A DNA stretch of 64,000 nt, from assembly GCA_038496445.1 (NCBI GenBank), contig JALMLS010000478.1:89506-153505 (forward strand). The letters run 5' to 3'. Each line of letters begins with the position of its first letter. Position 1 is the stretch's first letter. Both the position numbers and the translations under genes were made by a program. The notes beneath the pieces were generated by a model that saw nothing but the letters and a program-made list of their open reading frames with translations, had not been told where the DNA came from and did not search any database. This document shows positions 5,899-35,194 of the stretch, one piece after another. Source of the stretch: Trichosphaerium sp. ATCC 40318. Taxonomy: Eukaryota; Protista; Tubulinea.

Positions 5899-7892
5899 AT
5901 GGATTTGGTCTATTTCTGCGCTGTATTCTTAATTGTCACGTTTGTCGCTATGAATAATGGTAATACAGGTACGAGTAGTACAAGCCTTTAAGAATAACAA
6001 TAATTTTGTTTTAGTCATAACTTCAAGTGAACACGTTTGTGGCAATAATCTTAGTTGTTATCTGCGAGAAGAACCTACAGAGCTTATTCTCAATTCAACA
6101 AACTTGTTTTTTGATAACTCTACAATACCTTACGTTAGACAAAGCGTTGACATTTATGGTAAGTTGGTGGTTCTCAGTCAGTTGTAACTAAGTGCGCTTA
6201 GGATTGTATAATGTAAATGTCTCTTGCTACGAAATAGAGCAGTTACGCTCACTTTCTGTAATCAGTATCTCGATGTCGGGATTTACAATTCGAGACTGCT
6301 TTTTCTCACTAAGCGATTATGCGAATGTTACCATGACGTACTTGGAGCAAGGCAACCCTAAAAGCAATGTTAATACTCACTTTAGAAACATGACATTTAC
6401 TGGGCATCAAGCAGGCTTATATGTTGTTCCTAGTGTGCTCAATACGGCTGTGACTCTAAAAAATGTGGCATTTAGAGATATTTTTTTCGAATCATTCCCT
6501 GTTCCGGTATTTACTGTTGCTCACATAGAAAGAGCTTATTTGCAAGATTGTGTTTTTTCACAGATATCTCACGCCAACAACGAAACACTCACACAGGGTA
6601 CCAAAGACCAATCATGTTTGTCCATAACGCCACATAGGTGCTATTGTTTTTCAGAGCATTACAAGCGTACACAAGCAATTTATTTTGAATCTCATTTAAC
6701 TGATTTAATTAGGTTGTAATCAATTCTTGTTTCTTTGAGGACAATAATATTATTGATGCTCCACTTTTAAACATATTTTCAGATGAAGCAGAAATATCAA
6801 ACTCTAGTTTTGTGAGAAATAAAGCGAGCACATCACCTGACGGCACATGTAGGGGTAATGTTACATGTAGTTATGAGTATTAACCACAATTTGGAATAGA
6901 GTATGTGGATGTACAGTATACTAGGTTGCTTGTAGATTCTTGTGTGTTTGAGAATAATACTTGCATGTACGTTCTCTTGTTTGTTCTATTGTGAAGTATC
7001 TTGCCATTTACAATACTCGTTTAGAAGAACAAATTCTTCAGCAATTCTAACTTCTCCTTCTTTTGATGGGTTTGAAAGCAACATTACAATAAGGTCAAGA
7101 ATATTCTATTTACTGGTGTGGTGAAGTGCTTATCTTTGTGTAGAAATACAATCTTTGTTAATGCAACTGTGCCACCAATAATCACACCTACAGTTGAGCC
7201 AACTGCGCCACCGGCAACCACAACTACACTACCAAATGAAATTGTGTTATCTAGTACTTTGATAATAGATGGAGACTTGATCCACTCAGGAACAGCTACA
7301 ATTACTCCAGGAGGCTTTCTTGAAGTTGAAGGTAACACGTGATTCAGTTTTTGATATTTTATGTTATTGAGTCATCCTTGATCTCATTAAGTGTAGGATC
7401 TATTGTGATACCACCAAACACGATGTTCATCATTGATTTCACTGGTTACAATGATACAATTGTTGATGACACAAGAATAGAAGTAATGAGAAGTAACAAT
7501 GGCACAATAACCGGTAATGTTACGTTTGTTCCACCTCCACAAGAGACGTGTTTAAGTGCATCACTTGATAGAACTCTTTCATCGTATGTCTATGTCTACT
7601 TTTGAGTCATCTAAATGACCCTGATTTTGATTTTAGGATATTTGTAATTGTATCAAGACCTGACACTTGTGGCAACAAACCAGAAACAGTGAACGTTGGT
7701 ATGGTGCTTGGTATTACTTTTGGTGTTCTTGCATTGGTATGTTGTTATCTTGATTTTAGCATGTTCCTTTTGACTTGGTGATAGGTGGTCATTGGTCTTA
7801 TTGCCATCTTCTTTATTACAAAGTTGAGACATGCAATTGTACCATACTCATTACGTAAAATCTCACTAAAAGTTACTTCTACTGAAAGTTAA
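5899..7892 (+). CDS. Cell-surface type I membrane protein, family copy A (signal peptide, beta-helix-like repeats, Pro/Thr stalk, TM, short tail)
   Basis: Spliced ORF MDLVYFCAVFLIV...; periodic strands VTLKNVAFRD, VINSCFFEDN, ISNSSFVRN, LVDSCVFENN; PTVEPTAPP stalk; TM then KLRHAIVPYSLRK...STES*. Collinear with copies B-D. Confidence 0.8.
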
Positions 7893-8455
7893 TTGTAATA
7901 AACAATCGATTTAAGGCTCTTTGTTCAATGTAAAGTTCCATTTTATAGTTCAGTTGTAAAGTAAATAAATACAGCATTTGTTCGCAAACCATCTCGATAA
8001 TCAGGGCCAGCATTAACACAAACTAGTGTTATTTCAGGTCAACTCCTTTAATGAGAACATCTTGTGGCTACAAAATTACTGCCTGTTCCTCCGGGTACTA
8101 TCTAGCATGGCAAATATTAGCTGTTTAACATTGCACAGCTTTTGTGGTTTGTCTACGAGGCAAAAAAAATTCGGTGTTTGATAAGCTGCAAGCATAATCG
8201 TTTCAATAATAACGGAGTTACTTCAATAAGCCTGTTATATTCGGCTTTGAGTTTGAAATCATGCGCTACTTTCGTAGCCTTATCCTTGCTATTGGTCATA
8301 TTAAAGATAACCATTGTGCTCATCATCAGAGTTAGATTAAGACTGACACTGCAAGCAAGGACATTCAGAGAAAGGATTGTAACCGAAAAGCAAAACCGTT
8401 TATCCAAAACAGACTCAAATCAAAGGAATTTACGACTGTTACTAATTGGCACGTT

Positions 8456-8559
8456 ATGTCACTTGAGCACGACACTTTGATATAAGTTATATTGAACCAA
8501 AATACTTTAAAATCGCTTCGATTGTCAATAAACATACGAATACAGTGGCACAAGCAATC
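8456..8559 (+). pseudogene. Truncated, degraded copy of the 5' end of the F-box gene at 25775
   Basis: ATGTCACTTGAGCACGACAC...AATACAGTGGCACAAGCAAT aligns to 25775-25885 with indels and stops at the duplication junction. A shorter remnant lies near 18570-18620. Confidence 0.75.
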
Positions 8560-9589
8560 GAAGCTGGAAGTACAATGTAAGTACCTAACCAAGGAGACCT
8601 AACATCTCTCAAGGTATTGGAAGTCCTTGGCAACACTCAAATTATAATAGAAGCTTACCATAGAACTTTGTATCGCGTTTATCTACAATGTTGTCGACAA
8701 AAGAAGTAAATTATAGTATTTATACCGGTGAGTCCATTGTTCAGTCGTGTTACAATTATTGGAAATATAAATGGTACTCATTGTTGTCATTCAGCTGAAA
8801 ATTCCAATGACGTCACATGGAAAAATGTTGGGTTTTTTTGACATCCAACGAAATAAAAATCAACACGATTGTCCCTTTTATTTTGCACAGTATCTAAAGA
8901 ATTTTATTGGAGTTTTATCAACACTGATATTTGATAATAAAACGTGAACTCTTATTTTTCTCCACAAATTTTGTGGAGATATACTTGTGCTACTGCTCAA
9001 TTAGATAGTTTTTAGAAGAATACATAGCACACAAGTACTGCAAAACTTCACTTCGCTTTTTAAAGGATTTACGAGGACCGTTGGATCTAATGTTTATATA
9101 TTATGCACCACGCCATTGTGCTTGTATACCCTGTTTTAACTTTGTTTGCTTTTGACAATATCGAGAACAAACAAAACGCTCAAAGTTACAATCATGCCCC
9201 CCATCAGTGGTGTTGTCGTCATTGTTGAAACAAACAATGAGAACAGATCACACTTGATTATTTTTTAGAAACTGTTTTCCTCAAACCATCACGTGCGTTG
9301 ATTTCAAAAACTATGAATATCTTATCGTTCTAGTTACGAGGAGTAGCTATTTACTTTAGAAAATGGATTTGGTCTATTTCTGCGCTGTATTCGTAATTGT
9401 CACGTTTGTCGCTATGGATCATGGTAAAACAGGTACGAGTAGTACAAGCCCTTTATGATTAACAATAATTTTTGTTTTAGTGATAACTTCAAGTGAACAT
9501 GTTTGTGGCAATGATCTTAGTTGTTATCTGCGAGAAGAACCTACAGAGCTTATTCTCAATTCAACAAACTTGGTTTTGTTGAGTAACTA

Positions 9590-9834
9590 GAGATGGTATG
9601 GGAAACTGAAACAGTGAAAATTACGAAATTTTATAACTTCTATGTTTCAAACACAACTTACATAATATCAGGTATTTGAATTTTTTATGTTGCTCTACAA
9701 GGAGCGTAGAGTACGAAAATTGGCTTAGAATTTTGCTAAAAACTGTTGTAAATTGGAAATGTAAATTCTGAAATATTTCACTTTTGGCTCTTTTTTCAAA
9801 AAGTGTTAACAATTTCAGTTTTCCATACCATCTC
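9590..9834. mobile_element. 245-bp MITE with 22-bp TIRs and TA target-site duplication
   Basis: Left GAGATGGTATGGGAAACTGAAA; right end reverse-complements to GAGATGGTATGGAAAACTGAAA (1 mismatch). TA at 9588-9589 and 9835-9836. Absent from paralogues; keeping one TA restores the host frame. Confidence 0.9.
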
Positions 9835-10281
9835 TACTATACTGGGCTTGGAGTTACAAAAAGCGTTGACATTTATGGTAAGTTGGTTCTCAGTCAGTTG
9901 TAACTAAGTGCGTTTAGGATTGTATAATGTGAATGTCTCTTGCTACGAAGTCCAGTGGTTAATCTCATCTTTGTATGATAAAATCAGTATTTCGATGTCG
10001 GGATTTACAATTCGAGATTGCTCTATCGCACTACGCGAATATGAGAATGTTACCATTACGTACTTGGAGCAAGGCAACCCTAAAATCAATGGTAATACTC
10101 ACTTTAGAAACATGACATTTACTGGACGTGATACGGGCTTATATGTTATTAATAATGCGATCAATACTGCTGTGACTCTAAAAAATGTGGCATTTAGAGA
10201 TATTTTTCTCGAATCATTTCTTGATGCGGTATTTTTTGTTTCTTCTGCAAAAACAGCTTTTTTGCAAGATTGTGTTTTGTC

Positions 10282-10374
10282 TGTAACAGGTAAAGATGTC
10301 ACTCCGAACACAATATTTATTATCTAGGCCTTTTACATAGGTTGACTTTTACGTGGAGTAATTTCCCTCTTACA
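10282..10374 (-). repeat. 3' LTR (93 bp)
   Basis: Identical to 16298-16390. The sense strand carries TATA-like CTATGTAAAAGG followed by AATAAA. Confidence 0.95.
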
Positions 10375-10377
10375 TAG

Positions 10378-10390
10378 CTCCCCTATATCT
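10378..10390 (-). other. Polypurine tract of the retrotransposon
   Basis: Minus strand AGATATAGGGGAG lies just upstream of the 3' LTR. Confidence 0.65.
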
Positions 10391-10472
10391 GAAGTGTGCG
10401 TCCTCGTACACGCGACTGGAGCATAGGAAACCTTTGAAACCTGGTAACCGTAAAACGGAGGATGATTCATGC

Positions 10473-13400
10473 TCAGTCCTTCAGCTGCCTTTCTCTTTCA
10501 AACACTTCTTCTTCATTCTCTATTATCGCCTCTATCCAGGCTTTTAACTCTCTTACATCTTTACATCTCTTCACTTGAGCGACCAACCTGGATTGTGTGC
10601 TATTACTGCGCATATATGGACTACCCTTTCCCACTATGCTCAATAATGCTTTCACGCTATCTTTCATTGGTATAATCAGAATTTTATCTTTGATCGTTCC
10701 CAAGACTTTTAATAAAATTTCTATTCTGTGCTCATACCCCTTCGTTGTTTTATCTTTAACCATATCAGCCTTTTTAGTATTCTCTCTTATCTCTCTAATT
10801 CTTTTCGCTATTACTTTGGTTGTCGTCATCGCATCACCAGCTGTGGTTAACTCAGCCTCTGCTTTGATGTTAGGCAGGTATGTTTTACTTCTGTCTGGGT
10901 CATGGAACTCTTCTTCACGCCCTTCGAACTTCCTCATCTGTTCATCTTGCGTCAGTGCCCCTTCCGGCCGCAAGAACGAATCAATAAAAGGTTTCAATCG
11001 GCGGAAGTTAATTACTCTACTCATTCGGCTTTGAGGAGGTAAGTTGATAAGTGCTGTATTTGGAGACATCAGCTCTAATATCTCATACGGTCCCCTCCAT
11101 CTCTTAGCCAACTTTTTCTTTTCACCCGTCTTCACTTGAGGTACGAAGATGTACACTAGCTGACCTGCTTGAAAGTTCACAAATCTTGTTCTTTCATTGT
11201 AGTACTTCGCTTGCGTCTTCTTGGCCTTTAGTATATTTTCTCTCGCTATCTGGTATGCGAACCGTATTCTATGAGCAAGGGAATCCACCCAATTACCCAT
11301 ATTGTACGTGTCTGGTACTTCAACCGTCTCTTCTTTAGTGAGGTCAATTGGTAGTCTTGGTTCTCTACCAAACATCAACGCGTAGGGAGCGTATCCTGTG
11401 ACATGATGTACTGCTGTTCTGTAAGCATACAATGCGTAAGGTATCCAATAATCCCAGTTGTTCTGATCTTCGTTCACGAATGCTCTGATAATTTCTATCA
11501 ACGTGTGATTAAATCTCTCCACTTGACCATCTGTCTGTGGGTGAAATGCCGCTGTTCTGCTACCTTCAATGCGTAATATTTTGTACACTTCTTTCATCAA
11601 CGCGCCTGTGAAGTCACCACCTTGATCTGTTAAGACACGGTTGGGTATACCGTATCTAAAACAAAACTCTTTAACAAAAACAGGAGCTATATCAACCGCC
11701 TTATGCCGTGGCAGAGCATACGCATCAACCCATTTAGTAAAGTGGTCAGTGATCACTAGAAGGTACTTATTACCATTTCTCGTATCTGGCAGCGGTCCTA
11801 CAATATCCATTGCCACCAGTTGCATCGGTTGTAATACTGGGAATTCAACCATGAATCCTGGTTTTGGTAACCTCGGTGACTTAGCTCTTTGACACATCCT
11901 ACACGATTTGCACCATTCTCTAGTATCTGAGTACATGCCAGCCCAATAGAAGCGTTCACTGACCTTACCATAGGTCTTAATAAACCCTAGATGTCCTGCA
12001 AAAGGCAGGTCGTGGCATTGGCGAAGCACAAATGGTTGTAACGTTTTTGGTACTACAATCTGCATCTTGTTGCTCTCTCCAAATGAACGATTGGTACGAT
12101 TCACGTGATATAAGATACCTGACGTCTCATCGTACTTCAACCGTCTTGCAAATGTTATAAACACGCTTCTTCTAAAGCCTCTTTGCCTCGTCACATATGA
12201 CGGAACTTTTCCTTGTGTCAAAAACTGTATATAGGCCTTAAGTTCAGGGTCTTTCTCCTGACACTCTGCCCAGTTAATGGCTCCGTATTCTGGTGTGTTT
12301 TCTAAGACATTCACTTCCTCACGTCTCTCGGTGTTACCAAATTTTGTAAACGTATCATCACCTGTCCATAAAGACGTTTCAACTGCGTTAATATTGCATA
12401 ATGCCTCATTATTATAAGTATCATTTGCTAACGCATTGAGTTTATCTGACGCCCATGGTGGTCTTGTCAATGCATCAGCATCCGTATGTGTTGCTCCTTT
12501 CTTATACACTAACACAAAGTCCATTTGTTGAACCTCCAACAACCATCTAGCTAACATTGGTTTTGGGTCTGCCAGATTCTGTAAATATTGTAATGGCTTA
12601 TGATCCGTATATACAACCAATTTGAACTTTGCAAATGAGAGATATCCTTTAAACTCTCGTAACGCGAGCACGATTCCTAGCATCTCTCGTTCTATTGTTG
12701 AATATTTTCGTTGGGGAGCTGTGAACGTCTTACTGAAGTATGCTACCACGTGTTGTTTCTTCTTGTGTCTCTGCACTAACGTTCCTCCTGCAGCCACTTG
12801 GGATGCATCTACGTGTATTTCGAAAGGTTTGGTAAAGTCGGGATGCCTGAGAATAGGAGGTGAAGACAGCATGTCCTTTATCTTTTCAAACGCCAGCTGT
12901 TGTTCTTTACCCCATCTCCATCTAACACCCGTTCGCCTCAAACTGTTGAGCGGTTCTACTACGTGAGCATATTTGGGCACAAACTTTCTATAGTAACCTG
13001 TTAATCCTAAACATCGTTCTATCTCTTCGACCGTCCTCGGTGGATCAGCTTTCTGAATAGCATCTGTGATACGTGGATTTGTTGCAACTCCTTCTGCACT
13101 CACAACATGACCCAAAAACTCAACCTTATCTTTAAATAGAACTGATTTCTTCGCTTTCAGTTTCATGTTATGCTCTCGTAGCCTCTCAAACAATAACTTT
13201 AGGTGCACCAGATGATCTTCAAAGGTACTGCTAAACACTATTATGTCATCGACATAACACAAGCACGTCTGCCATAGCAAGCCGGATAACATTAGGTTCA
13301 TGTGCCTTTGGAATGTAGCTTGCGCGTTCTTCAAACCAAAGGGCATACCAACACATTCGAAGAGACCCCATTCAGTCGCAAAGGCTGTCTTTTCGGCGTC

Positions 13401-15185
13401 ATCTTCGTGCATTCTAATTTGCCAGTACCCGGAGATAGCATCAAATGTACTGAAGTATTTTGCTTTTGCTAACGCTTGCATCATGTCATTGACACGCGGC
13501 AATGGGTGTACGTCTTTCTTGGTCACCTTATTTAGGCGCCTGAAATCAATACAAAACCTCCACTCCCCACTGCGTTTCTTTACCAGTACCACTGGTGATG
13601 ACCATTCTGACTTTGAGTATTTAATCATGTTATTCTTTAACATTTTCTCGATTTCAGCCTTCGCAATTTCTCTCTGTTTTGGTCTCATTGGTCTGTAAGG
13701 AGTACTAATCGGTCTCGTACCCTGAGGTACAGGTATACGGTGTTTAATGCCTTTCACAGCACCTGGCTCTCGCAATGAATCTACAAAGATATCATCGTTC
13801 TGAGCCATGAACTTATACGCTTTCAACTTCTGTTCTTCTGTGAGGCGACATCCATTAAGTTTAAATCTCTTTTGTGCAGCGTATACATCCTCCATGGTTA
13901 CCTTCGCGCACAAGTCTACTATATCTTGTTTATGCTTTCGGTAATCAAAGTTAAGAGAACACACTTCGTCTCCTTCTTCAAGTGCTCGGAAGCTAGCTAT
14001 GTTATAGTTCGCTGGTATCCTTCTCATCACATTGTGAGGGTTCATGACTCGTACTCTTACTAAAGACCTACGTGCCTTACACACCGATCTACTCAATTGT
14101 ATACCCACGTCGTTCAACAGGTTAGCATGACCGCCCTGGTTCTCCAACTGCAGAGGTTCTATCAACCCTTCTTTGTTGTTCACCGGTGTTGACAGTTTTG
14201 CTAGGAACGAACATTCTGTGTATGGCGGTAATTTGATTGCGTTCGTAGTAATCACATTTGCGTACTGCGTCTTTCTATCATTTTCTTGGGTACATGTAAT
14301 GGGTACTTCTTCTCCTTTATGGTTTATCATCATCAACCTTCCGTAATCAATACACATGTTCCACTTTTTCAACATTGTAGTTCCAAGTAATAACTTATAT
14401 TTGAACTCTTTAATCACGTGACACCACACCGGTATCTGCGTCTTACCGATTGTGATTTGCATTTTAATCAAACCCAAAGCTTTAATTTGCTTGTTATCCG
14501 CTGTGTATATTGGCCTTGTAGCATCAGGTATGATATTCTTTTGCAACTTCAACCGTTCTACCAGACGCGAATCAACAATGCACATTGAAGCTCCAGAATC
14601 TAACAACGCATTGACTTTTAGGTCGTTAACACGCACGCGCGCCTTGGTGACAGTATAATGGAACGCCTCACTTTTCTCACCCTCATTATCACACACATTC
14701 AACAATCTTGCCGTAGCAGACAAATGACACGAGTTATCAAACAACACATTGTAACTCCAAAAACTTTTATTGTCACGATCTCTACGGTACGAATCTTCAT
14801 CGCGATCTCTTCTTCGCAGCTCTCTCTCTCTTCTGTAACCGTCTCTGTCACGGTCGTCTTCACGTTCACGTCGGTATCGATCTTCGCTTGGGTAATCGTC
14901 ATCCATCGCGTTAACTCTTCTTGCTGAGGGACAATCATAACTCATATGGCCATACCCATTGCAGTTAAAGCACTTCGGTCCATCATCCAAGCGTTTCCTT
15001 GGTGGCGAAGAGCGTCTCTGAGCGGTGATGGTCATATATCTGTTGCCTTCCAGAGTATCCTTGACGTTGTCCATATCCACTGGATCCATAATTGCGGCGG
15101 TTGTTCGTCGATCTGTATCTCTGCTGTTGACGTCCTTGATACCCTCGTTGCGATCTCCACTTAGCTTGGCGTACTCCTCTGTCAT
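10473..15185 (-). CDS. pol: Pol polyprotein (CCHC knuckle, aspartic protease, RT, RNase H, integrase, C-terminal extension)
   Basis: CFNCNGYGHMSYDC; LLDSGAS; FCIDFRRLN, MPFGLKNA, YVDDII; VDASQ..YTDHKPL; H..GH..C..C, MDIVGPLP, TDQGGDF, QVERFN; GPY module. Confidence 0.97.
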   Translation of the reverse strand: MTEEYAKLSGDRNEGIKDVNSRDTDRRTTAAIMDPVDMDNVKDTLEGNRYMTITAQRRSSPPRKRLDDGPKCFNCNGYGHMSYDCPSARRVNAMDDDYPSEDRYRREREDDRDRDGYRRERELRRRDRDEDSYRRDRDNKSFWSYNVLFDNSCHLSATARLLNVCDNEGEKSEAFHYTVTKARVRVNDLKVNALLDSGASMCIVDSRLVERLKLQKNIIPDATRPIYTADNKQIKALGLIKMQITIGKTQIPVWCHVIKEFKYKLLLGTTMLKKWNMCIDYGRLMMINHKGEEVPITCTQENDRKTQYANVITTNAIKLPPYTECSFLAKLSTPVNNKEGLIEPLQLENQGGHANLLNDVGIQLSRSVCKARRSLVRVRVMNPHNVMRRIPANYNIASFRALEEGDEVCSLNFDYRKHKQDIVDLCAKVTMEDVYAAQKRFKLNGCRLTEEQKLKAYKFMAQNDDIFVDSLREPGAVKGIKHRIPVPQGTRPISTPYRPMRPKQREIAKAEIEKMLKNNMIKYSKSEWSSPVVLVKKRSGEWRFCIDFRRLNKVTKKDVHPLPRVNDMMQALAKAKYFSTFDAISGYWQIRMHEDDAEKTAFATEWGLFECVGMPFGLKNAQATFQRHMNLMLSGLLWQTCLCYVDDIIVFSSTFEDHLVHLKLLFERLREHNMKLKAKKSVLFKDKVEFLGHVVSAEGVATNPRITDAIQKADPPRTVEEIERCLGLTGYYRKFVPKYAHVVEPLNSLRRTGVRWRWGKEQQLAFEKIKDMLSSPPILRHPDFTKPFEIHVDASQVAAGGTLVQRHKKKQHVVAYFSKTFTAPQRKYSTIEREMLGIVLALREFKGYLSFAKFKLVVYTDHKPLQYLQNLADPKPMLARWLLEVQQMDFVLVYKKGATHTDADALTRPPWASDKLNALANDTYNNEALCNINAVETSLWTGDDTFTKFGNTERREEVNVLENTPEYGAINWAECQEKDPELKAYIQFLTQGKVPSYVTRQRGFRRSVFITFARRLKYDETSGILYHVNRTNRSFGESNKMQIVVPKTLQPFVLRQCHDLPFAGHLGFIKTYGKVSERFYWAGMYSDTREWCKSCRMCQRAKSPRLPKPGFMVEFPVLQPMQLVAMDIVGPLPDTRNGNKYLLVITDHFTKWVDAYALPRHKAVDIAPVFVKEFCFRYGIPNRVLTDQGGDFTGALMKEVYKILRIEGSRTAAFHPQTDGQVERFNHTLIEIIRAFVNEDQNNWDYWIPYALYAYRTAVHHVTGYAPYALMFGREPRLPIDLTKEETVEVPDTYNMGNWVDSLAHRIRFAYQIARENILKAKKTQAKYYNERTRFVNFQAGQLVYIFVPQVKTGEKKKLAKRWRGPYEILELMSPNTALINLPPQSRMSRVINFRRLKPFIDSFLRPEGALTQDEQMRKFEGREEEFHDPDRSKTYLPNIKAEAELTTAGDAMTTTKVIAKRIREIRENTKKADMVKDKTTKGYEHRIEILLKVLGTIKDKILIIPMKDSVKALLSIVGKGSPYMRSNSTQSRLVAQVKRCKDVRELKAWIEAIIENEEEVFERERQLKD

Positions 15186-16278
15186 ACTCGTCTACACATT
15201 GTCGCTTAGAGTCGTCATCTCTTCGCGAATCTGCTTTTCTTTTCGTCGCCAACGAATTTAGCGCATCTTTGCGTCTAGCTGCCTCTACCGCTTCCTGTAC
15301 ACGTCTGTCTTCCTCTTTTTGCTTCTTAGCGTCCTTATCTGCGACCTCTTGACTAAGCTCCTGCCACGACGCCGTTTTGTAGATCGTTTGTGCTCCTGAC
15401 GTGTTGATCTCTCCTTTTAACGTCTTCATCACAAATTGGCGCGTCTCTGCCTTTAAACCTTTCAAAAACGCTGCCGCACGCGTACGTTCGTCGACCAGAG
15501 CTGTATCCGCCAATCGCATGCAGTATTCATAATATGCCGTCAAACTTTGCGTCTTTTTCTGTTGTACCGACTGTAACAACTCCAACGCTCGTACGGACTG
15601 TACAGCCATCTGAAATCCCTGGATTAACGCTCTAATAGCTTTTGCGTAATCTCTGTTGAACTTTCTCGCCTTCAACAATCTCGCTGCACGTCCTTCACAC
15701 CTTTGTCGTAACACATATACACATGCTTCTTCATTGCACTTGAACACCGAGCAATATTCTTGGATCTTTGACAAGAACACTTCTAACTCTACGGCTTTGC
15801 TTGAAAACATCGGTATGTGGTTGAAACGCTTGCACTCCGTTTGTTTACGCTTGTTACCGCGCCATTTAACCCTCTTCGGTTTGTCCTCATCATCGTACAC
15901 AAGATGTGGCATAAAGGCTAATACCGTCGCTCTCTCTGCTTCTGTGATCTCCGTAAGATGTTCCAAAACGCTTCGACTCCTGACCATTGCTTTTGTGCGT
16001 TCCTTTGATTTATCTTCCGACTCTGAACTTGAACTTGAAGAACTAGCTGTACTTGTGGAACTATCACTGCTAGAACTGACTTCCTTCGAATCACCTTTCG
16101 ATCTCCCTTTTCTTTTTGGCTTTGTGTCTTTTTCTTCCTCATCAGCCTTCTCCTCCTTTCTTTTTCCTCTCGGTATACTCTCCTCCTCCTCTTCTTCAAC
16201 ACTTTCGACGTACTCTTTATCCAAAGTCTTCTTTGGCTTCCGTCTCTTAGTAGTAAGCTTCGTTTGTGTTTTAGACAT
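14983..16278 (-). CDS. gag: Gag-like ORF
   Basis: 431-aa ORF starting 20 nt after the 5' LTR, with a capsid-like segment (VQQKKTQSLTAYY..FLKGLK) and overlapping pol in another frame. Confidence 0.85.
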   Translation of the reverse strand: MSKTQTKLTTKRRKPKKTLDKEYVESVEEEEEESIPRGKRKEEKADEEEKDTKPKRKGRSKGDSKEVSSSSDSSTSTASSSSSSSESEDKSKERTKAMVRSRSVLEHLTEITEAERATVLAFMPHLVYDDEDKPKRVKWRGNKRKQTECKRFNHIPMFSSKAVELEVFLSKIQEYCSVFKCNEEACVYVLRQRCEGRAARLLKARKFNRDYAKAIRALIQGFQMAVQSVRALELLQSVQQKKTQSLTAYYEYCMRLADTALVDERTRAAAFLKGLKAETRQFVMKTLKGEINTSGAQTIYKTASWQELSQEVADKDAKKQKEEDRRVQEAVEAARRKDALNSLATKRKADSRRDDDSKRQCVDEYDRGVRQAKWRSQRGYQGRQQQRYRSTNNRRNYGSSGYGQRQGYSGRQQIYDHHRSETLFATKETLG

Positions 16279-16280
16279 CT

Positions 16281-16295
16281 CTGCTCGAGTCGCCA
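16281..16295 (-). other. Primer-binding site (tRNA 3'-end complement, possibly tRNA-Arg)
   Basis: TGGCGACTCGAGCAG begins 2 nt after the 5' LTR; TGG complements CCA. tRNA identity is inferred from the GTCG-CCA end. Confidence 0.75.
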
Positions 16296-16297
16296 GA

Positions 16298-16390
16298 TGT
16301 AACAGGTAAAGATGTCACTCCGAACACAATATTTATTATCTAGGCCTTTTACATAGGTTGACTTTTACGTGGAGTAATTTCCCTCTTACA
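16298..16390 (-). repeat. 5' LTR (93 bp)
   Basis: Identical to 10282-10374. Confidence 0.95.
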
Positions 16391-18902
16391 TGTCACAAAT
16401 CACCATTGCTCACACCAACAAAACATCGCTGGGTACACCTAACGACCAAATATGTTTGTCCATAACGTCATATAGCTGTTATTGTTTTTAATGGTGTGGA
16501 AACAGTACGCAACCAATTTATTTTGAATCTCATTTAACTGCTTTAATTAGGTTGTAATCAATTCTTGTTTGATTGAGGACAATAATATTATTGATGCTCC
16601 ACTTTTATTCATATTTTCAGGTGAAGCAGAAATATCAAACTCTAGTTTTGTGAGAAACCAAGTGAGCATACCATCTATTGGCAGATGCACGGGTACTATC
16701 TTACTTTCAATTATGAGTACTAATCCTCTTGGAATAGAGTCTGTGGATTTACTGAGTGTTAGTAGGTTGCTTGTAGATTCTTGTGTGTTTGAGAATAATA
16801 CTTGCATGTACGTTATCTTGTTCTGTTGTATCGTGAAGTATCTTGCCATTTACAATACTCGTTTAGAAGAACAAATTCTTCAGCAATTCTAACTTCTCCT
16901 TCATTTGATGGGTTGGAAAGCAACATTACAATAAGGTCAAGAATATTCTATTTACTGGTGAAGTGCTTACTTTGCGTAGAAATACAATATTTGCTAGTGA
17001 TGGTAATTGTGAAACAAATGTATTAGTTACTTGTTTTAATAATCAGAGATAGTAAACACAAATCCAGTATTTTCTTGTCGCTCGATAACAAATAATTTCA
17101 CTTGCAAATGTTACAGTACTACATTCTTTGGAGAGTGTAACACAACTGGTACCAATATTCATACTCAATTTAACACTAACTGATAGTATTTAATAGTTAC
17201 ATGCAACAACGAGCAGTACTGTGGTAAGACTTTTACAAAGAACAATGGAAAAAAAGACGTAACCTCTTTTAATCTTACATTTTAATTGCTTATATTCTAG
17301 TAATCCCAACAGTTGAGCCACCAATTGCACCTACAGCTGTAACTCTACCAAATAAAATTGTGTTATCTGGTCCTTTGATAATAGATGGAGATTTGATCCA
17401 CTCAGGAACAGCTACAATTACTCCAGGAGGCTTTCTTGAAGTTGAAGGTAACACGTGATTCAATTTTTGATATTTTATGTTATTGAGTCATCCTTGATCT
17501 CATCAAGTGTAGGATCTATTGTGATACCACCAAACACGATGTTCATCATTGATTTCACTGGTTACAATGATACACTTGTTGATGACACAAGAATAGAAGT
17601 AATGAGAAGTAACAATGGCACAATAACCGGTAATGTTACGTTTGTTCCACCTTCAGAAAAAACGTGTTTAAGTGCATCACTTGATAGGACTCTTTCATCG
17701 TATGTCTATGTCTACTTTTGAGTCATCTAAATGACCCTGATTTTGATTTTAGGATATTTGTAATTGTATCAAGACCTGACACTTGTAGAACAGAAACAGT
17801 GAACGTTGGTATGGTGTTTGGTATTACTTTCGGTGTTATTGTATTGTTGGTATGTTGTTATCTTGTTTTAACGTCTTCGTAACTTTTGACTTGGTGATAG
17901 GTGGTTATTGGTCTTATTGTCATCTTCTTTGTTACAAAGTTGAGACATGCAATTGTACCATACTCATTACGTAAAATCTCACTAAAAGTTACTTCTACTG
18001 AAAGTTAATTGTAATAAACAATCGATTTAAGGCTCTTTGTTCAATTTAAAGTTCCATTTTATAGTTCAGTTGTAAAGAGCATTTACCTGCACCTATGTTC
18101 ACAAACCATGTCGAAAATCAGGCTTAGTATTAACAAACTAGCGTTATTTGAACGAGAACAAGATTACTTTTTTTCTAATGTTATCTTGCAACAAAATTAC
18201 TAACCGTTTCACCGAGTACTATCTAGCATACCAAATATTAACTGTTTGCCATTGCAAAGTTTTTGTGGTTTGTCTACAAGCCAAAAAAATTCGGTGTTTG
18301 ATAAGCTGCAAGCATAATCGTTTTAATAATAACGGAGTTACTCCAATAAGCCTGTTATATGCGGCTTTGAGTTTGAAATCATGTGCTAGTTTTGTAGTAT
18401 TCTACTGGCTATTGGTCATGATAAGGGTAATCATTGTGCTCATTATCAGAGTTAGATTAAGAGTGACACTTCAAGTAAGGACATTCACAGGATTTTATCC
18501 AAAACACAAAAGCCGTTTATCCAAAACAGACTCAAATCAAAGGAATTTACGACTGTTACTATTATACACGTTATATCTTGAGTTATATTGACCCATAATA
18601 CCTTAAAATGGCTTTGATTGAACTATTTAGATCATGCGTTCTTGTTGATCTACAATACCAGATTGGAGGAGAATACGTCTCACCTAGCTTCGATCCCCTG
18701 GATCACTTAGCCAGAGACCCTTCCATTTATTTTAAATCTTAATCTTCCCTGGTACTGCTGATGTTGTTTTTGACGATGCTACCGTACTTAAACAACTACC
18801 TCTCACTTATCAAACAGCAGTAAAATACTTATTTTTCTCTTATAGTTATGGTAGTCTTGCTCAGAAGTGATAGTTTATTAAACTCATAGTAGTACAAAAT
18901 GT

Positions 18903-22194: not shown

Positions 22195-22945
22195 TGACAT
22201 CATAACCCAATTAAATAAAAATCCTCATTTTCTGGTTATTGTTGTATGCGGTTTCAGAGATGTCATCTATTCCATTAGCATTAATATGTGATGATCATTT
22301 CGCTGTTTAAAAGGATTTATGAGGACCTTTGAATCTAATATTGATACATACAATATACCATTCTAATACGCTTGTATACCAGCGCTAGTTATCACATTGT
22401 TTGAATTCCAAAATAGTTTGAAAAATGAGTTTTTATAAAAAAGTTGTTTTGACTGTCAGTACTATTCCTCTGTGCAGCATAAACATATCGCAAAATGGTT
22501 TTGCGCATATGCAATTATATCATTACAGCTATATGTTCTAAGCATCAATTGAAGTGTAAGATGGTTCTGAGGTGAGTAAAAATGTCTCAAAGATTCTCGA
22601 AATCCACAATTATCAAACATCAAAAATTTGGTAATTCTGTAACTTCCTCAAAAGCGATGCTGCCCCGAAACTTAGATTAAATTCAACAATATCTAATTTT
22701 TCACAAACATACAAATGTCAATAGATATTTAGATATCTAAACATGGATGAGAGCAAAAATATAAGGTAACATTGAGCTTTCGTTAGTTGTCGTCATCGTT
22801 GTAACAAACAATGAGAACAGATCACACTTGATTGGGAAAACATTTTTTAGAAACTGTTTTAGGTCATCAATCACGTGCGTTGAATTCAAAAACTATGAAT
22901 ATCATTACCGTTCTAGTTACGAAGCGTAACTATTTACTTTAGAAA

Positions 22946-25258
22946 ATGGATTTGGTCTATTTCTGCGTTGCGTTGTTCGTATTAGTCGCTATGACTCATG
23001 GTAGAACAGGTACGAGTAGTATTAAAACAAGCCTTTAGTAAAGGCCGTTCAAATAACAGAAATTGTGTTTTAGTCATAACTTCAAGTGAACATGTTTGTG
23101 GCAATGATATTGGTTGTTATCTGCGAGAAGAACCTACAGAGCTTATTCTCAATTCAACAAACTTGACTTTGGGTAACTTTAGTGGCGAAACCGAAGTTTC
23201 AAAAAGCGTTGACATTTATGGTAAGTTGGTGGTTCTCAGTAAAGTTGTAACTAAGCGCGTTTAGGATTGTATAATGTAAATGTCTCTTGCGAAGGAGAGC
23301 GGCTATCCCCACTTTACAACAATATCAGTATCTCGCTGTCAGGATTTACAATTCGAGATTGCCTAGTCAGACTTTACGATTATGCGAATGTTACCATGAC
23401 GTACTTGGAGCAAGGCAACCCTAAAAGCAATGTTAATATTCACTTTAGAAATATGACGTTTACTGGACATGATACAGGCTTAAGGGTTATAGACAGGTAC
23501 AACGCTATTGCTATAGATACAGTTGCTTACAACTGAACTATAGTGACGTGTCGCTTAAAAAAGTGACATTTAGAGATGTTTTTATATCATCATTTGCTGC
23601 TTGGAATGTTCTGAGCATTGATTTCACAGAGAGGGCTTATTTACAAGATTGTGTTTTTTCGCATATTGCTTACAATGAACCATATAGAGCAGGTACCACA
23701 GAAAAATTATATTAACTTTTTAGATAACACCACATAGCACTGATTCGTATTAAAACAGTGACAAGAGTACACAAGCAATTTATTTTGAATCTCATAACGT
23801 ATAATTAGGTTGTAATCAATTCTTGTTTCGTTGAGGACAATACTATTTTTGAGACTACATTTTTAAACATAGTACAAACAGATGAAGCAGAAATATCAAA
23901 CTCTAGTTTTGTGAGAAACAAAGCGAGCATACCATCTGACGGCACATGTAGGGGTACTATCTTACATGTAGTTATGAGTACTAACCATAATTTGGAATAG
24001 AGTATGTGGGTGTACACTCTAGTAGGTTGCTTATAGACTCTTGTGTGTTTGAGAATAATACTTGCATGTACGTTCTCTTGTTTGTTCTATTGTGAAGTAT
24101 CTTGCCATTTACAATACTCGTTTAGAAGAACAAATTCTTCAGCAATTCTAACTTCTCCTTCATTTCTCGGGTTGGAAAGCAATATTACAATAAGGTCAAG
24201 AATATTCTATTTACCGGTGAAGTGCTTATCTTTGTGTAGAAATACGAGATTTACTAATGACAGTGGTAATTATAAAGACAACTAAATAGTTTTAATCCAA
24301 GGTAGAACCAAACATAGTATTTTCCTGTGACTCAAATAATCTCAATTTCACGTGTGAAAAAAACAAATGCTACAGTACTACATTCTTTGGAGAGTGCAAT
24401 ACAACTGGTAACTATACCAATATTATATTCACACTCAACTTAACAGTATCTGACAATATTTAATAGTTACATGCAACAACGAACATTATTGTGGTAATAC
24501 CTTTTACGGTTCAAAAAAGCGTACTATCTAACATAGCAATCTAGTAACTCCCACAGTTGAGCCAACTGTGCCACCGACAACCACACCTACAACTGCAACC
24601 CTACCAAATGGAATCGTGTTATCTGGTCCTTTGATAATAGATGGAGATTTGATCCACTCAGGAACAGCTACAATTACCCCAGGAGGCTTTCTTGAAGTTG
24701 AAGGTAACACGTGATTCAGTTTTTGATATTTATGTTATTGAATCCTTGATCTCATCAAGTGTAGGATCTATTGTGATACCACCAAACGCGACATTCATCA
24801 TTGATTTCAGTGGTTACACTGTTGCAATAATTGATGACACGAGAATTGAAGTAATGAGAAGTAATCACGGTTCAATAAGCGGTAGTGTTGCACTTGTTCA
24901 ACCAGAAAAGCCATGTTTAAGTGCAATGCTTGACAGGAGTCTTTCATCGTATGTCTATGTCTACTTTTGAGTCATCTAAATGACCCTGATTTTGATTTAA
25001 GGATATTTGTAATTGCATCAAGACCTGACACTTGTGGCAACAAAACTGAAACAATGAACCTTACTATGGCGCTAGGTATTACTTTTGGTGTTCTTGTATT
25101 GGTATGTTGCTATCTTATTTTTAGCGTGTTCACAACTTTTGACTTGGTGATAGGTGCTCATTGGTATTATTGTTATTTTCTTTGTTCCAAAGTTGAGACA
25201 TGCAATTTTGCCGTTCTCACTACGTAAAGCACATAAAATTTCTTCTACTGCAAGTTAA
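22946..25258 (+). CDS. Surface-protein family copy C (apparently intact)
   Basis: Collinear exons with copy A, plus Cys-rich mini-exons at ~24300-24495 and an extra intron at ~23496-23544. Confidence 0.8.
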
Positions 25259-25774
25259 TTGTAATAAACAACAAAATGATTTAAGGCTCTTTGTTCATTC
25301 TACATTGCCATTTAATTGCTTGTTTTGTGTCACATCCCTAGTACCATTGGCTCCTACAACAACACCTGATTTGAGGGGACCCTATCTCTTGGCTTGTTTT
25401 AAGGACTGGTTTGTATAGCCATTATCTCTTGGACCTTACAACTAACTGTAACATTGCAAAGATTTTGTGACTTGGCTAAGAGCCAAAAAAATAATACTTG
25501 TTTGCCATGCAATCGTTTCCAAAAATTACCGGTTGCTTCAAAAAGCCTATTACTACATTTGGCTTTAAAGTTTAAAATCTCACGTTCTAGTTTCGTAGCC
25601 TTATCCTTGCTATCGGTCATATTAAGGATAAACATTGTGCTCATTGTCAGAGTTAGATTAAGACTGACACTTCAAGCAAGGACATTCAGAGAAAGGATTT
25701 TAACCAAACAAAAGCCGTTTATCCAAAACAGACTCAAATCAAAGGAATTTACGACTATTACTAATTGGAGCATT

Positions 25775-27341: not shown

Positions 27342-28400
27342 TTATTGCATTTGTCTGCTCATGAACACTGTCGAATGCCCTTTTGTTTCTTTTTGTTTAA
27401 TAGTACCATTTGAAAGGTAGTTCTTATGCTTCATCGAGTATACCTTTGTTATAATAACATTGCATTATCAGGACACCTTCTTTGTTCCACTCATTGTACT
27501 CTCCGTCAAGTTCACCATTTCTATAGTAGCTCTCAACAGTTTACCATTCTCATGCCATTCCTTATGATTTCCTTCAAGTACTTCTTTAACAAAAAAACAC
27601 CTTTTTAGCAAGGTACCATCTCCATAGTATTCCTTGTATTCTCCTTCGAGATAACCCTTGATTTTAAAACAAGCTTGAATAAGTTCCCATTTTTGTAAAA
27701 CTCTTTGTATACTCCTTGTTGTCTACCATTGACAACGTAGAACTGCCTAACCAATACACCATTTGTGGACCACTCCTTGACCTTACTGTCACGTGTACCT
27801 ATGATCCTTTTACGTTGTAGACGCAAGGTGCCATTATGGTCATATCTCCTGGATGTGCCTTCAACTGCATCATTGACATAGCGATGCTTCAAAAACAAGC
27901 CACCTTCTTCATTCCACTCAGTGCACTTTCCTTCAAGTTTATCATCGACATAGTGACACCGCTTACGTAATGTTCCACGTGCATCCCATGTCTTATACTT
28001 TCCTTCAAGTTTATCGTTGACATAGTGACAATGTTTACGTAATCTGCCATGTATGTCCCACATCTTGTACGCTCCTTCGAGGTTATCGTTGACGTAATGG
28101 CAATGTTTACGTAATCTGCCATGTATGTCCCACATCTTGTACTCTCCATCAAGGTTACCGTTGGTAAAGTAACACTGTCTTGCTAGCTTATAGCTATTTT
28201 TGGTACTGTGCTGGTGTATTTTTAGCCACTTGCCATGCTTCTTCAAGTCTCTATCAAATCTAGAGGTTGTAGCTGTTTGTTTTGATAAGAGTGGCCATTT
28301 AAGGTATATATCAATATCTATTTCGATTATTACGAGCTGTAGCTCTATTGGAAGTTGTAGTAGATGACAATAATCCGACTTTGAAGCTCCCGCCTATGGT
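27342..28400 (-). pseudogene. F-box-like + MORN-variant repeat protein with frameshifts
   Basis: LLQLPIELQLVII N-terminus in frame with 23-aa repeats (LEGxYKxWDxxGxLRKxCHYVND; near-exact 69-bp unit at ~28030-28140). Repeats continue in other frames to ~27340. Confidence 0.65.
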
Positions 28401-28479
28401 TTTTGTTTAGAATGGCGTACATCTTGCTTTTACAACACGATAGTACCTCTTCTGTCATTTTTAGTAAAACGATTACTTA

Positions 28480-29553
28480 CAATGAGGTGTTGGAGTTTGA
28501 GTGGTGTTGGTATCGCTTAAAGTGAGCGTAAAAGCACTTAACCAATATATGCAAGGCAAATTTGAGAGCACTTTTTTTTTTGATTTATCTTACCTTTTTC
28601 TGTGGGTCGTCACCGTTATTCATGGGGATCATGCTATTCGGTAGCAGCGTTCTCATTGGTAGTGTTTTTCCACTTCTTCCTAATGTAGTGACCACTGTAG
28701 GTTGCTACATAGAGCGTGGATGCTTGATCTTGGTTTTATTGTTTGGGTATGCACTTTCAATTTATTCCATTTTTGTTCTTATAACACCAATTCTTCTTTA
28801 CAGGCCATTATTTGCAAAGAAGCTTCGTATAGAGGCTTGTACTCTAACAAAACACCAGAAGACTTCAAAATTTCTGATAAAACAGTTTCTTGGGTTCTAT
28901 CACTTGTTGGTGCTCATACTATTTTATTGATTGTTGCTGTATACAAGTAACTCAATCACTATCTCACTAATTTCATTCCTACTAGTCCGTTGTTGGTCTC
29001 CCAAAGAGAGGAACAGTCGTACTGGATACTATTCGTCAATAACAATTACTATAGCTGCGAGATGAAGCCAGGCTTCAATGTTATTGTATACATCATTTCT
29101 GCTTGTAACGTAAGTCTTAGTTGATTCATGTTGACTCTTAACTCATAGAATTAGGGTGCATTATTATTGGTTACAAGTGTTGTAGCTTTCAGAGTTAGAT
29201 TGATACCTATCAAGCAGTTTAATGAGTCCAAACTCATTTTCTTTTCTGTTTACAATGTAGCCTTTTTCTCCGTGCTTTGTTTTGCTCTTGCTCTTGCACA
29301 GATTGAAAGATTTACTCAGTTCCTTCTATCCTTATTTATCATATCAGGATCTAGTACGTCCATTGATGAAATACAGTTTTACATAGCGCTAACGTTGTTT
29401 TTAGCCATCACAGTCAATTCAATTTTCTTGCACAAGACACGCTTTTCAACATTCTTGTCAAGTGTTAACTCATCCAGGTCATCTTCAAGCACTTCTAAGT
29501 TTAAAACCTGCGTTCTCAAACTGCCATACCTTCATAAAATTAATCGTATCTAG
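28480..29553 (+). pseudogene. Class C (GABA-B/Grl-like) GPCR 7TM region, frameshifted, no ectodomain visible
   Basis: SSPLFMGIMLFG, PLFAKKLRI, AFRVRLIPIKQFNESKLIFFSVYN are class C 7TM hallmarks. Stops and frameshifts near 28830 and 29040. Confidence 0.65.
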
Positions 29554-29878
29554 AAATACCTCTGTCACCGATAGCGAATATAACGTGTAAGCTCATCACA
29601 TGTAAAACAAAACTGTAAAAAAAAAGCTCTATGTCTCGATGCAATTGGTGGTATTGTTAGACAGTGTCAGAAAGATTTAGTCTCATTTATCTAGACACTT
29701 GTGCACGTGGTTTGGTACACTCAAATTTCCCTATTCCTGTTACACCACAACTCCGCGGAGTAGATAGTAGAGCGATAAAGAGTAGTAGACGTTGTCAAAA
29801 CGTTACTGCTGACTTAAATTAGAGAAAGTTAAGTTTTCGGAACTGTTCGCTCAAAAAACTTTTCGGTAAAGCATCAAC

Positions 29879-32600: not shown

Positions 32601-32975
32601 ACAAACGATTTTGTGGCAGTTAGTTGGTGAGAAGCTAATTTAACTATCATGTGACGAAATAAACTACATGTTTACAAAGAAACGTTTTGTCTTTGTTTTT
32701 TTTTTCTTGGACCTGTAGTCTCGGTACATACAAAGACACCAAGTTTTTGTACCAGCTTCATGGCTTACATGTATGTTGATCTTGAACCGAAAGATGCCTT
32801 CCGAAAGCAATTCTAAGTAGGGACTGGGAAAGTAGTTGATCTAACCATTTCATCTAATAGCCTAATACGAGCTAAAAATAGCAACCAGAGGTGTAAAACG
32901 CAGTGTTAATAACTACCTCTCTAACAACCTAAGTGAGAATAAAGTAGGGTATCTACTGTTTATTGAAAAGTACAA

Positions 32976-35194
32976 TTAACTTTCAGTAGAAGTGACTTTT
33001 AGTGTGTTTTTACGTAATGAGTATGGTACAATTGCATGTCTCAACTTTGTAACAAAGAAGATGGCAATAAGACCAATGACCACCTATCACCAAGTCAAAC
33101 TTGCTACTGCTAAAAACAAATAACATACCAATAAAAGAACACCAAAGGTAATACCAAGCACCATACCAACGTTCACTGTTTCTGGTCTGTTGCCACAAGT
33201 GTCAGGTATTGATACAATTACAAATATCCTAAAATCAAAATCAGGGTCATTTAGATGACTCAAAAGTAGACATACGATGAAAAAGTTCTATCAAGCACTG
33301 CATTTAAACACACCTTTTCTGGAGGTGGAACAAGTGTAACATTACCACTTATTGTGCCATTGTTACTTCTCATTACTTCAATTCTTGTGTCATCAATTAT
33401 TGTATCATTAAAACCAGTGAAATCAATGATGAATGTTGTGTTTGGTGGTATCACAATAGATCCTACACTTGATGAGATCAAGGATGACTCAATAACATAA
33501 AATATCAAAAATTGCGTTACCTTCAACTTCAAGAAAGCCTCCTGGAGTAATTGTAGCTGTTCCTGAGTGGATCAAGTCTCCATCTATTATCAAAGGATTA
33601 GATAGCGTAATTTCATTTGGCAGAGTTCCAGTTGTAGGTGTGGCTGTTGGAGGGACTGTTGGCTCAACTGTTGGAGTTACTAGAAAGTACAATGTTAGAA
33701 AAATAAGCTCCTTGTTCGGTTGCTGCTCTTTGTAAACGTCTTACCACAATACTCCTCGTTGATGCATGTGACTATCAAGTACTGTTAGACAATGCCTTTG
33801 AGTATGAATACTGGTACCAGTTGTATTGCACTCTGCCTTTTCCGCATGCGAAATTTGTTGTAAGCCGGTCACAAGAAAAAGTTGTATTTGGGTCTAATTG
33901 GAGTAAACTATTAGTTGAATTTGTGGTCTCGATTTTACCATTATTATCATTAACAAATCTTGTATTTCTACACAAAGGTAAGCACTTCACAGTTAATAGA
34001 ATATTCTTGACCTTATTGTAATGTTACTTTCAAACCCATCAAAAGAAGGAGAAGTTAGAATTGCTGAAGAATTTGTTCTTCTAAACGAGTATTGTAAATG
34101 GCAAGATACTTCACAATAGAACAAACAAGAGAACGTACATGCAAGTATTATTCTCAAACACACAAGAATCTATGAGCAACCTAGTAGAGTATACACCCAC
34201 ATACTCTATTCCAAATTGTGGTTAGTACTCATAACTACATGTAACATAGTACCCCTACATGTGCCGTCAGATGGTATGCTCACTTTATTTCTCACAAAAC
34301 TAGAGTTTGATATTTCTGCTTCATCTGACTGTACTATGTCTAAAAATGGAGTCTCAAAAATAGTATTGTCCTCAACCAAACAAGAATCAATTACAACCTA
34401 AGCAGAAATGAGATCGTAAAAATAACATGGTCGTGTACTCTTGTGCTAGCAATTAAGTAAATCAAAGAGCTAGAGGTAGCTGAGGGGATTGTTCCGTTAT
34501 AAGAATTCTGTGAAAAAACGCAATCTTGCAAATAAACTGTTTCTGCATTTCGAATATCCAGTACATCAAAAAAAGAAACAAAAACAATATCTGTAAATGT
34601 CACATTTTTAAGAGTCACCACACTACTATACAGTTGTAAGCGACCATATCATATAATAGTGTACCTGTCTATAACCTCTAGGCCCGCATTATATCCAGTA
34701 ACTGTGATATTTCTGAGTTAGATTAGCATTGCTTTTAGGTTTGCTTAAACTCAAGTACGTAATGGTAAAATTTGCAAAATCGTAAAGTATGACTTGACAA
34801 TCTCGAATTGTAAATCCCGACATCGAGATACTGATATTATTGTAATGTGAGAGTAACCACTCCGTTTTGTTGCAAGAGACATTCACATTAAACAATCCTA
34901 AACGCACTTAGTTACAACTGACTGAAAACCAACTTACCATAAATGTCAACGCTTTTTCTAAGTGTCACAAAGTTACCAAAAACCAAGTTTGTTGAATTGA
35001 GAATAAGCTCTGTAGGTTCTTCTCGCAGATAACAATTAATATCATTGCCACAAATGTGTTCACTTGAAGTTATCACTAAATTGTAAAATTATGTAATTAA
35101 ATTATAAAGCGCTTGCACTATTCTTACGTGTGTTACCATGACTCACAGCGAAAAACGTGATAACTAATACAGCGTAGAAACAAAGCGAATCCAT
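32976..35194 (-). CDS. Surface-protein family copy D (inverted; possible frameshift near 34690)
   Basis: Reverse complement is collinear with copy C including the extra intron. ACT GGA TAA TGC is out of frame relative to copy C (ACT GGA CAT GAT ACA). Confidence 0.7.

Follow-up and report, generated by a model that had tools for sequence, protein, structure and literature searches.

Free-living amoebae need to distinguish prey, kin, mates and viruses, and to our knowledge almost nothing is known about amoebal surface recognition molecules beyond those of Dictyostelium. In that genus the kin-recognition proteins TgrB1 and TgrC1, which contain IPT/TIG-type domains, belong to a multigene family characterized by high variability and by signs of diversifying selection (PMC13648343; PMC12745789). 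A second described system is that of the chlamydial polymorphic membrane proteins and the Pmp-like proteins of trichomonads, which are expanded surface families with a repetitive outer part of the beta-helix type, and the trichomonad forms, which mediate adherence, have one C-terminal transmembrane (TM) helix followed by a short tail (PMC6701047; bioRxiv 10.1101/454884; PMC11166332; PMC10715098). Here we compare with these systems a locus of the amoeba Trichosphaerium sp. ATCC 40318, which lies in a window of 64,000 nucleotides (nt) corresponding to positions 89506-153505 of the contig labelled C150; all coordinates are those of the window unless a contig is named. Repeat and BLAST comparisons reveal four paralogous genes, termed copies A to D, within positions 5899-35194 of the window, and an earlier note on this DNA had described them as a four-copy surface protein family with near-identical introns and hypervariable ectodomain segments. 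We propose, as a reasonably probable reading, that these genes are part of a large inherited family in which variable stretches are set into a fixed frame, in which gene conversion and selection both act on the variation, and which provides a repertoire for recognition or adhesion.

The four copies are present as counted in the earlier note, but the family extends well beyond them. The genome assembly searched for copies comprises 70.3 Mb in 642 contigs. Two further copies are found upstream of A to D on the same contig (E at 65.3 kb and F at 81.5 kb of C150), giving a total of six, and a further seven (G to M) are located on other contigs, so that the close clade consists of 13 copies (A to M). 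The exons encoding the N-terminal cap and the membrane-proximal part have about 45 matches each throughout the genome, paired about 1.8 kb apart and organized in arrays, and genome searches show that these two exons are also common to arrays on contigs C273, C210, C322 and C81. On this basis the genome has at least 45 members of the family, among which the C150 cluster is a separate and more homogeneous clade. Copies H and G are located on contigs C507 and C522, respectively, both of which can be aligned colinearly with C150:62.7-86.9 kb (identity 91-97%, or 95-97% within long blocks), and E/H and F/G are therefore allele-like pairs, in the form of either haplotigs or a very young segmental duplication. 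If C507 and C522 are alternative haplotypes, as is probable, this implies a haplotype divergence of about 3-5% in the region. One 4-kb insertion is seen in the colinearity of these two contigs with C150.

The family is predicted to encode type I single-pass membrane glycoproteins of about 500 amino acids (aa). The protein starts with a hydrophobic, signal-like N-terminus and a conserved cap with two Cys residues, after which come ten rungs of 21-37 aa and, except in A, a module with six Cys residues. A Thr/Pro-rich stalk then leads to a conserved module of about 110 residues, and the C-terminal end is formed by a hydrophobic stretch (about 27 residues) and a conserved basic tail. The hydrophobic N-terminus and the 27-residue stretch ahead of the basic tail can be read from the sequence in all copies, and there are 14-17 N-glycosylation sequons per protein, all of which fits the single-pass surface-type protein that had been suggested. 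The AlphaFold2 (AF2) model of P0001, a transcript-derived paralogue of 551 aa that was returned by a profile search with exon 9, contains only one confident helix, and this is the homologous TM segment at residues 489-515 (block-mean predicted local distance difference test scores, pLDDT, of 68, 83 and 67 over residues 491-520). Each rung consists of a block of 9-13 residues that is nearly fixed (mean entropy 0.41 bits) and then a variable stretch (1.40 bits), often with in-frame insertions or deletions. The four hypervariable segments reported previously all correspond to stretches of this kind, at least four more of which exist, and the variability is confined, as had been stated, to short segments between conserved blocks. 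All four sets of variable peptides are recovered by the gene models, those of copy B being readable only after a miniature inverted-repeat transposable element (MITE) is removed from its exon 2.

The difference between frame and variable stretches is large at both the nucleotide and the amino acid level. Mean identities among A to D are 46-59% (nt) and 21-31% (aa) in the four variable segments and 88-100% (nt) and 76-100% (aa) in four framework blocks, while silent distances are 0.12-0.30 in framework codons and 0.26-0.68 in the most variable columns. With a pooled intron distance of 0.07-0.23 among the same copies, the variable coding segments are indeed more diverged than the neighboring introns, which is the contrast that drew attention to this locus. 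The introns had been described as near-identical, and this is true of i2, i6, i7, i8 and i9, which are 95-100% identical across A to D, but not of i1, i3, i4, i10, y1 and x1-x3, which are 10-50% different, most of all in D. Hence the exon/intron contrast is real but the introns are not uniformly frozen. The 58-nt intron i6 was claimed to be the same in A, C and D, and it is exactly identical in these three copies, with 0 such matches expected by chance; in B it differs at four positions and by one indel.

Selection was analyzed by means of a self-written codon-model likelihood program that includes M0, M1a and M2a as well as a dual-rate variant, in which three silent-rate classes are allowed. 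The data were 251 ungapped ectodomain codons from 11 copies, from which the gapped columns, containing the most radical parts, were left out. The likelihood-ratio test (LRT) of M2a against M1a gives 173.5, with 16% of sites at an omega (dN/dS) of 5.8, and the dual-rate test on the same codons gives 23.0 (p = 1e-5), with 29% of sites at omega 2.7; the silent-rate classes are in the ratio 1 : 3.8 : 12.9, and the dual-rate null is far better than M1a. When each segment is given its own tree, the dual-rate LRT is 14.9 for N1, 3.1 for N2 (not significant) and 12.4 for N3, compared with 0.0 for the membrane-proximal control. Sites with P(omega>1) > 0.5 make up 64 of the 116 between blocks versus 8 of the 112 inside blocks (Fisher p = 9e-16). 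A cross-validated variable class, for which the outgroups K, L and M alone were used in order to avoid circularity in the choice of columns, has in the ingroup an omega of 1.37 (p = 0.07 versus 1), while omega is 0.25 in the conserved class and 0.43 in the C-terminal part. Four pairs that are recent and independent of each other (E-H, F-G, A-B and C-I) were also compared. In these, the variable class has proportions of nonsynonymous (pN) and synonymous (pS) differences of 0.246 and 0.113, corresponding to a pN/pS of 2.18 (binomial p = 0.0007), versus 0.61 in the remaining codons, and silent divergence is not higher in the variable class. Positive selection on the variable stretches is therefore supported, with none in the membrane-proximal part. 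Replacement changes exceed silent ones in the variable segments, and the dN/dS at or below 1 that the earlier note would have taken as a refutation of diversifying selection is not seen.

Gene conversion between the copies is clear. For seven pairs, among them A-C, A-D and C-D in exons 5-7 and A-F in exon 3, polymorphic sites are shared in significant runs by a Sawyer-type test (p <= 0.001). Segment trees constructed with FastTree conflict with good local support, as copy A clusters with F/G in the 5' portion, with C/D across exons 5-7 and with B in the 3' portion; the PHI recombination test is not significant (p = 0.09). Short cassettes also move between copies. At segment 3, H matches F in 18 of 18 nt, but its likely allele E has 11 differences. 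Following the last rung, E and F have a three-residue cassette in common on one haplotype; the other haplotype has a different one, which is near-identical in G and H (two of three residues). Intron i6 falls within the conversion tract that covers exons 5-7, and part of the intron identity does come from conversion, a process that had been considered as a potential explanation for all of it. Conversion brings in silent and replacement differences alike and so cannot alone lift their ratio above 1, and since the ratio exceeds 1, the data are read as conversion plus diversifying selection.

This reading can be put in terms of a simple scheme. Conversion among copies keeps the framework blocks and several introns near-identical and shifts the short variable cassettes, and copies are born and lost by way of transposable element insertions, deletions and intron loss. 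The variable stretches may align on one side of the rod and so form a binding surface, and the conserved tail may link the various proteins to a common intracellular partner. As a whole, the family would then be a set of inherited surface proteins for adhesion or recognition, the diversity of which is maintained by selection. Roles in self, prey or pathogen recognition, as the earlier note envisaged, can be offered only as pure inference.

A number of results weigh against this reading, and they concern the selection tests, the condition of the copies and the fold. With regard to selection, the LRT falls from 173.5 to 23.0 once silent rates are allowed to vary, segment N2 loses significance, and the outgroup-defined class taken as a whole is not significantly above 1. 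In addition, one tree per segment was assumed although conversion tracts may be as short as about 20 nt, the most radical columns are excluded by their gaps, the sequences are few and the model code is home-made. The first three of these results would also be understandable if constraint on the loops were simply relaxed, such that they tolerate any residue, and if patchy conversion evened out what is sufficiently similar and stalled at diverged cassettes, without any positive selection; near-identical flanks beside scrambled segments would then require no advantage of diversity. Conversion is demonstrably frequent, three silent-rate classes fit far better than M1a, and silent divergence is likewise two- to three-fold higher in columns picked by amino-acid entropy, all of which favor such an explanation. 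However, neutral loops are expected to have an omega near 1 and not higher, whereas the four independent recent pairs have a pN/pS ratio above 2 with no elevation of pS, the dual-rate test is significant overall and in two of the three segments with a null C-terminal control, and conversion, as noted above, affects both types of change equally. We consider relaxed constraint to be unlikely on balance, although it is the alternative that we take most seriously.

With regard to the condition of the copies, B, D, F and G each bear a lesion, and two to three of the four copies in the window are damaged or aberrant. Copy B is split by two transposable elements; copy D has lost the donor site of i3 together with three of the six Cys residues of its Cys-rich module, requires a retained intron and an odd acceptor to remain open, and may be decaying; copy A lacks the Cys-rich module; and, among the copies beyond the window, F carries an internal deletion and the frame is broken in the Cys-rich module of G. 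Moreover, a transcript of the A-D clade was not found in the protein collections searched by exon words and the exon-9 profile. Such a picture might be expected of a decaying array in which the window copies are mostly pseudogenes or silent relics, the working members are elsewhere and the divergence represents drift. That possibility seems very improbable in view of the gene models, in which intron positions were projected through a 13-copy alignment and nearby GT..AG pairs were searched for frame-open paths. All 13 close copies yield an open path of 12-16 exons with conserved intron positions and GT..AG sites (B after removal of the elements), the framework codons are under purifying selection, as seen from the omega values of the conserved class and the C-terminal part, and A to D all have a conserved stretch of about 150-200 nt ahead of the ATG.

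The damage to copy B also appears to be new. Three other full copies of the MITE in exon 2, with 91-99% identity, are found on contigs C36, C124 and C16, and this family has therefore been mobile recently. The Ty3/gypsy long terminal repeat (LTR) retrotransposon in exon 3 has open reading frames on the minus strand for gag (431 aa) and pol (1570 aa), with Pfam matches to protease, reverse transcriptase, RNase H, integrase and zinc knuckle, and it is the sole full copy of its kind in the assembly, with relatives that are at most 73% identical. Since removal of the insertions leaves copy B with a fully open frame and the two LTRs are identical, the gene was inactivated very recently, which argues against long-standing decay. 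The 93-nt LTRs are unusually short and the element is apparently intact, and a solo-LTR-like match (97%) is present on contig C30.

Evidence for expression comes from the paralogue P0001, the transcript of which is found in MMETSP and in a JGI record, with an identity to this genome of about 100%. The corresponding cDNA (L064) can be placed on the minus strand of C81:28196-30505 in 16 exons, including a 16-codon exon between z1 and y1, and hence the family is expressed and spliced as modelled. In comparison with copy C, P0001 has one extra intron, located in its counterpart of exon 5, and it seems to lack intron x3. Scans of metagenome contigs for spliced exon 8/9 junctions were blank, as was the L064 positive control, and they are therefore uninformative about expression.

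Short cassettes that move between copies (the F-type segment 3 in H and the three-residue cassette after the last rung), together with several defective copies that are nonetheless retained, bring to mind the cassette-copying systems of antigenic variation in trypanosomes, Borrelia and Anaplasma and of chicken antibody genes, but a programmed diversification of this type, in which the array with its damaged copies would be a store of cassettes copied into an expressed member during growth, is the least probable explanation of all, as there is no sign of somatic change, the events are fixed in the assembly and equally well explained by germline conversion, and no dedicated expression site, flanking recombination signals or nuclease gene was seen in the window. 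Trichosphaerium is a multinucleate amoeba with a complex life cycle, and were such a store to exist, the surface coat would change within a clone, and a free-living protist would have a means of diversification that resembles antigenic variation or antibodies but is built on a beta-helix.

With regard to the fold, the ectodomain is likely a right-handed beta-helix. This is the best guess because the rungs are periodic, the single Pfam match of full-length P0001 is to NosD, if below threshold (E = 0.82; 9.5 bits versus a cut-off of 23.6), the language-model neighbors of the ectodomain that have names are all right-handed beta-helix families (0.92-0.94, to be taken as a lead only), and an AF2 model of the exon-3 frame of copy A from 12 rows is all-beta with short strands, albeit at a pLDDT of 44.6, which is too weak to use. 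Family searches were carried out with single exons of the A-D copies, exon profiles and full-length P0001. The family exons gave a sub-threshold match to Pentapeptide_3 alone in Pfam (E = 0.6) and nothing relevant, and no sequence relative was found in Pfam, in NCBIfam (searched with P0001) or in the PDB (searched with P0001 and two exon profiles, with chance-level matches only). Comparisons by hhalign between rung-bearing exons are not significant (E = 0.18 and 0.075), and AF2 on P0001 alone yields a pLDDT of 36.7 and no usable three-dimensional model. MAFFT repeatedly aligned one rung onto another. The beta-helix scaffold put forward in the earlier note is thus suggested by periodicity, sub-threshold NosD and the language-model neighbors, while no match to a beta-helix family model (Beta_helix, NosD, Chlam_PMP or DUF1565) is significant.

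The same searches bear on the distribution of the family. Word searches with the exon-3 frame and exon 9 of copy A had no match and those with P0001 returned only itself, and when exon 9, the most conserved exon, was used as a profile against 1.84 billion representative proteins, the only hits were P0001 and one weak bacterial repeat protein. As judged by these sequence comparisons, the family is found so far in this amoeba alone and is lineage-restricted.

The features of the cluster are listed in Table 1. The window has a G+C content of about 36%, and the introns are 37-139 nt in length with a median of 48. The stretch termed intron z1 looks coding in A to C and E to H but contains stops or frameshifts in D and I to M, and for this reason, and from its intron ends, it is considered to be an intron, with independent support from cDNA L064, in which the homologous sequence is removed. 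An apparent frameshift in exon 3 of copy D falls within z1 and was rejected. In copy A the introns x1-x3 are absent together with the Cys-rich module, and y1 is absent as well. Copies A, B, F and G are without y1 and have four extra codons in its place (compare 6386-6597 in A with 23449-23692 in C), and it seems that part of the former end of the y1 intron became coding in these copies. The conserved stretches of about 150-200 nt 5' of the ATG of A to D are at 5730-5898, 9223-9362, 22776-22945 and 35195-35437 (minus strand), and they include, about 60 nt ahead of the ATG, a palindromic CACGTG that is a candidate for a shared promoter element. Elsewhere in the window, a gene with tandem leucine-rich-type repeats (about 14 units of 66 nt, or 22 aa) is present twice, at 36577-37715 and 62200-63207, the first 300 nt of the two being 96% identical, and a 72-nt repeat is present four times at 27566-28140 (three in tandem, with the first one 359 nt upstream) within a minus-strand open frame at 27605-28246.

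Table 1. Positions in the window of the four gene copies, their parts and the inserted elements
Feature	Position	Strand	Remarks
Copy A	5899-7892	+	Intact; 12 exons, 483 aa; open from ATG to TAA with GT..AG at all junctions
Copy A exons	5899-5968, 6015-6158, 6202-6337, 6386-6597, 6638-6666, 6713-6854	+	Splice-site search guided by 13-copy alignment
Copy A exons, continued	6900-6966, 7025-7093, 7144-7331, 7397-7583, 7637-7736, 7785-7892	+	Same splice-site search
Variable segment 1, copy A	6107-6142	+	After rung 1; 46% mean nt identity A-D, in-frame indels
Variable segment 2, copy A	6228-6260	+	After rung 2; 53% nt identity; two sites with P(omega>1) > 0.9
Variable segment 3, copy A	6300-6317	+	After rung 3; 59% nt identity; three sites with P(omega>1) > 0.9
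Intron z1, copy A	6338-6385	+	48 nt, in frame and stop-free; resembles conserved coding sequence
Variable segment 4, copy A	6495-6533	+	After rung 5; 48% nt identity
Intron i6	A 6967-7024, C 24068-24125, D 34081-34138	A +, C +, D -	58 nt; identical in all three
TM segment, copy A	7689-7817	+	Interrupted by intron i10 (7737-7784); short conserved cytoplasmic tail to 7889
Copy B	9363-18008	+	Broken by two transposable elements; open after in silico removal, 15 exons, 517 aa
MITE in copy B exon 2	9590-9834	not set	245 nt; terminal inverted repeats of about 22 nt; TA target duplication
Ty3/gypsy LTR retrotransposon in copy B exon 3	10282-16390	-	6.1 kb; 93-nt LTRs 100% identical; 4-bp target duplication
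Copy C	22946-25258	+	Intact; 16 exons, 514 aa; complete set of 15 introns and six-Cys module
Six-Cys module exons, copy C	24240-24265, 24318-24407, 24467-24493	+	
Copy D	32976-35194	-	508 aa, open only with intron i3 read through and a non-homologous acceptor

A literature search revealed no such amoebal family, and the paper on the Trichosphaerium genome contains no mention of gene families, surface or adhesion (PMC10521059); within the literature searched, the family is therefore undescribed, as had been claimed. The same genome was reported to have unusually many genes from giant viruses (PMC10521059). The family described here is a concrete candidate for a recognition system, with dozens of genes, a fixed frame that is predicted to be rod-like, and fast-changing stretches that are reshuffled by conversion. 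If its members were to bind prey, partner cells or giant viruses, they would represent a new scaffold for an inherited recognition repertoire, beside leucine-rich repeats and immunoglobulin-type domains. One copy of the cluster has been freshly disrupted by two mobile elements, and the likely haplotig pair offers allele-like comparisons and is a test bed for the speed at which cassettes move.

Like the Pmp proteins, the amoeba family is expanded and its members have a predicted outer part of the beta-helix type, with one TM helix and a short tail as in the trichomonad forms; rungs 7-9 bear an FxxN-type motif, and Chlam_PMP is among the language-model neighbors. In contrast, there is no match to PF02415 even at E values up to 5 and no series of GGA[ILV] motifs, the FxxN-type motifs are found in rungs 7-9 only, and an autotransporter barrel is absent. 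The amoeba genes are intron-rich, and their products have a Thr/Pro-rich stalk, a Cys-rich module and a membrane-proximal module that is distinct. Any kinship with the Pmp proteins is putative. There is also some resemblance to the ends of autotransporter passengers, since the nearest named language-model neighbors of the membrane-proximal module, at the level of a lead, are the pertactin, rOmpB-passenger and AC_1 clusters (0.77-0.85) and the module sits where a beta-helix rod would end, but it has neither a hidden Markov model match nor a beta-barrel translocator.

The Tgr proteins of Dictyostelium differ in that no IPT/TIG match was found by Pfam in the amoeba exons or in P0001, no arrangement of partner pairs was seen, and the variation in the amoeba family was measured between paralogues and one haplotype pair rather than between strains. 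Nevertheless, both are multigene families of very variable, single-pass surface proteins in amoebozoans, with signs of diversifying selection in each. By design, the nearest known systems are the trichomonad Pmp-like surface proteins and the Tgr proteins of Dictyostelium, and the sequence features found here place the family within neither. As the cells of this amoeba fuse, the family may plausibly be an analogue of the Tgr proteins in distinguishing self from non-self.

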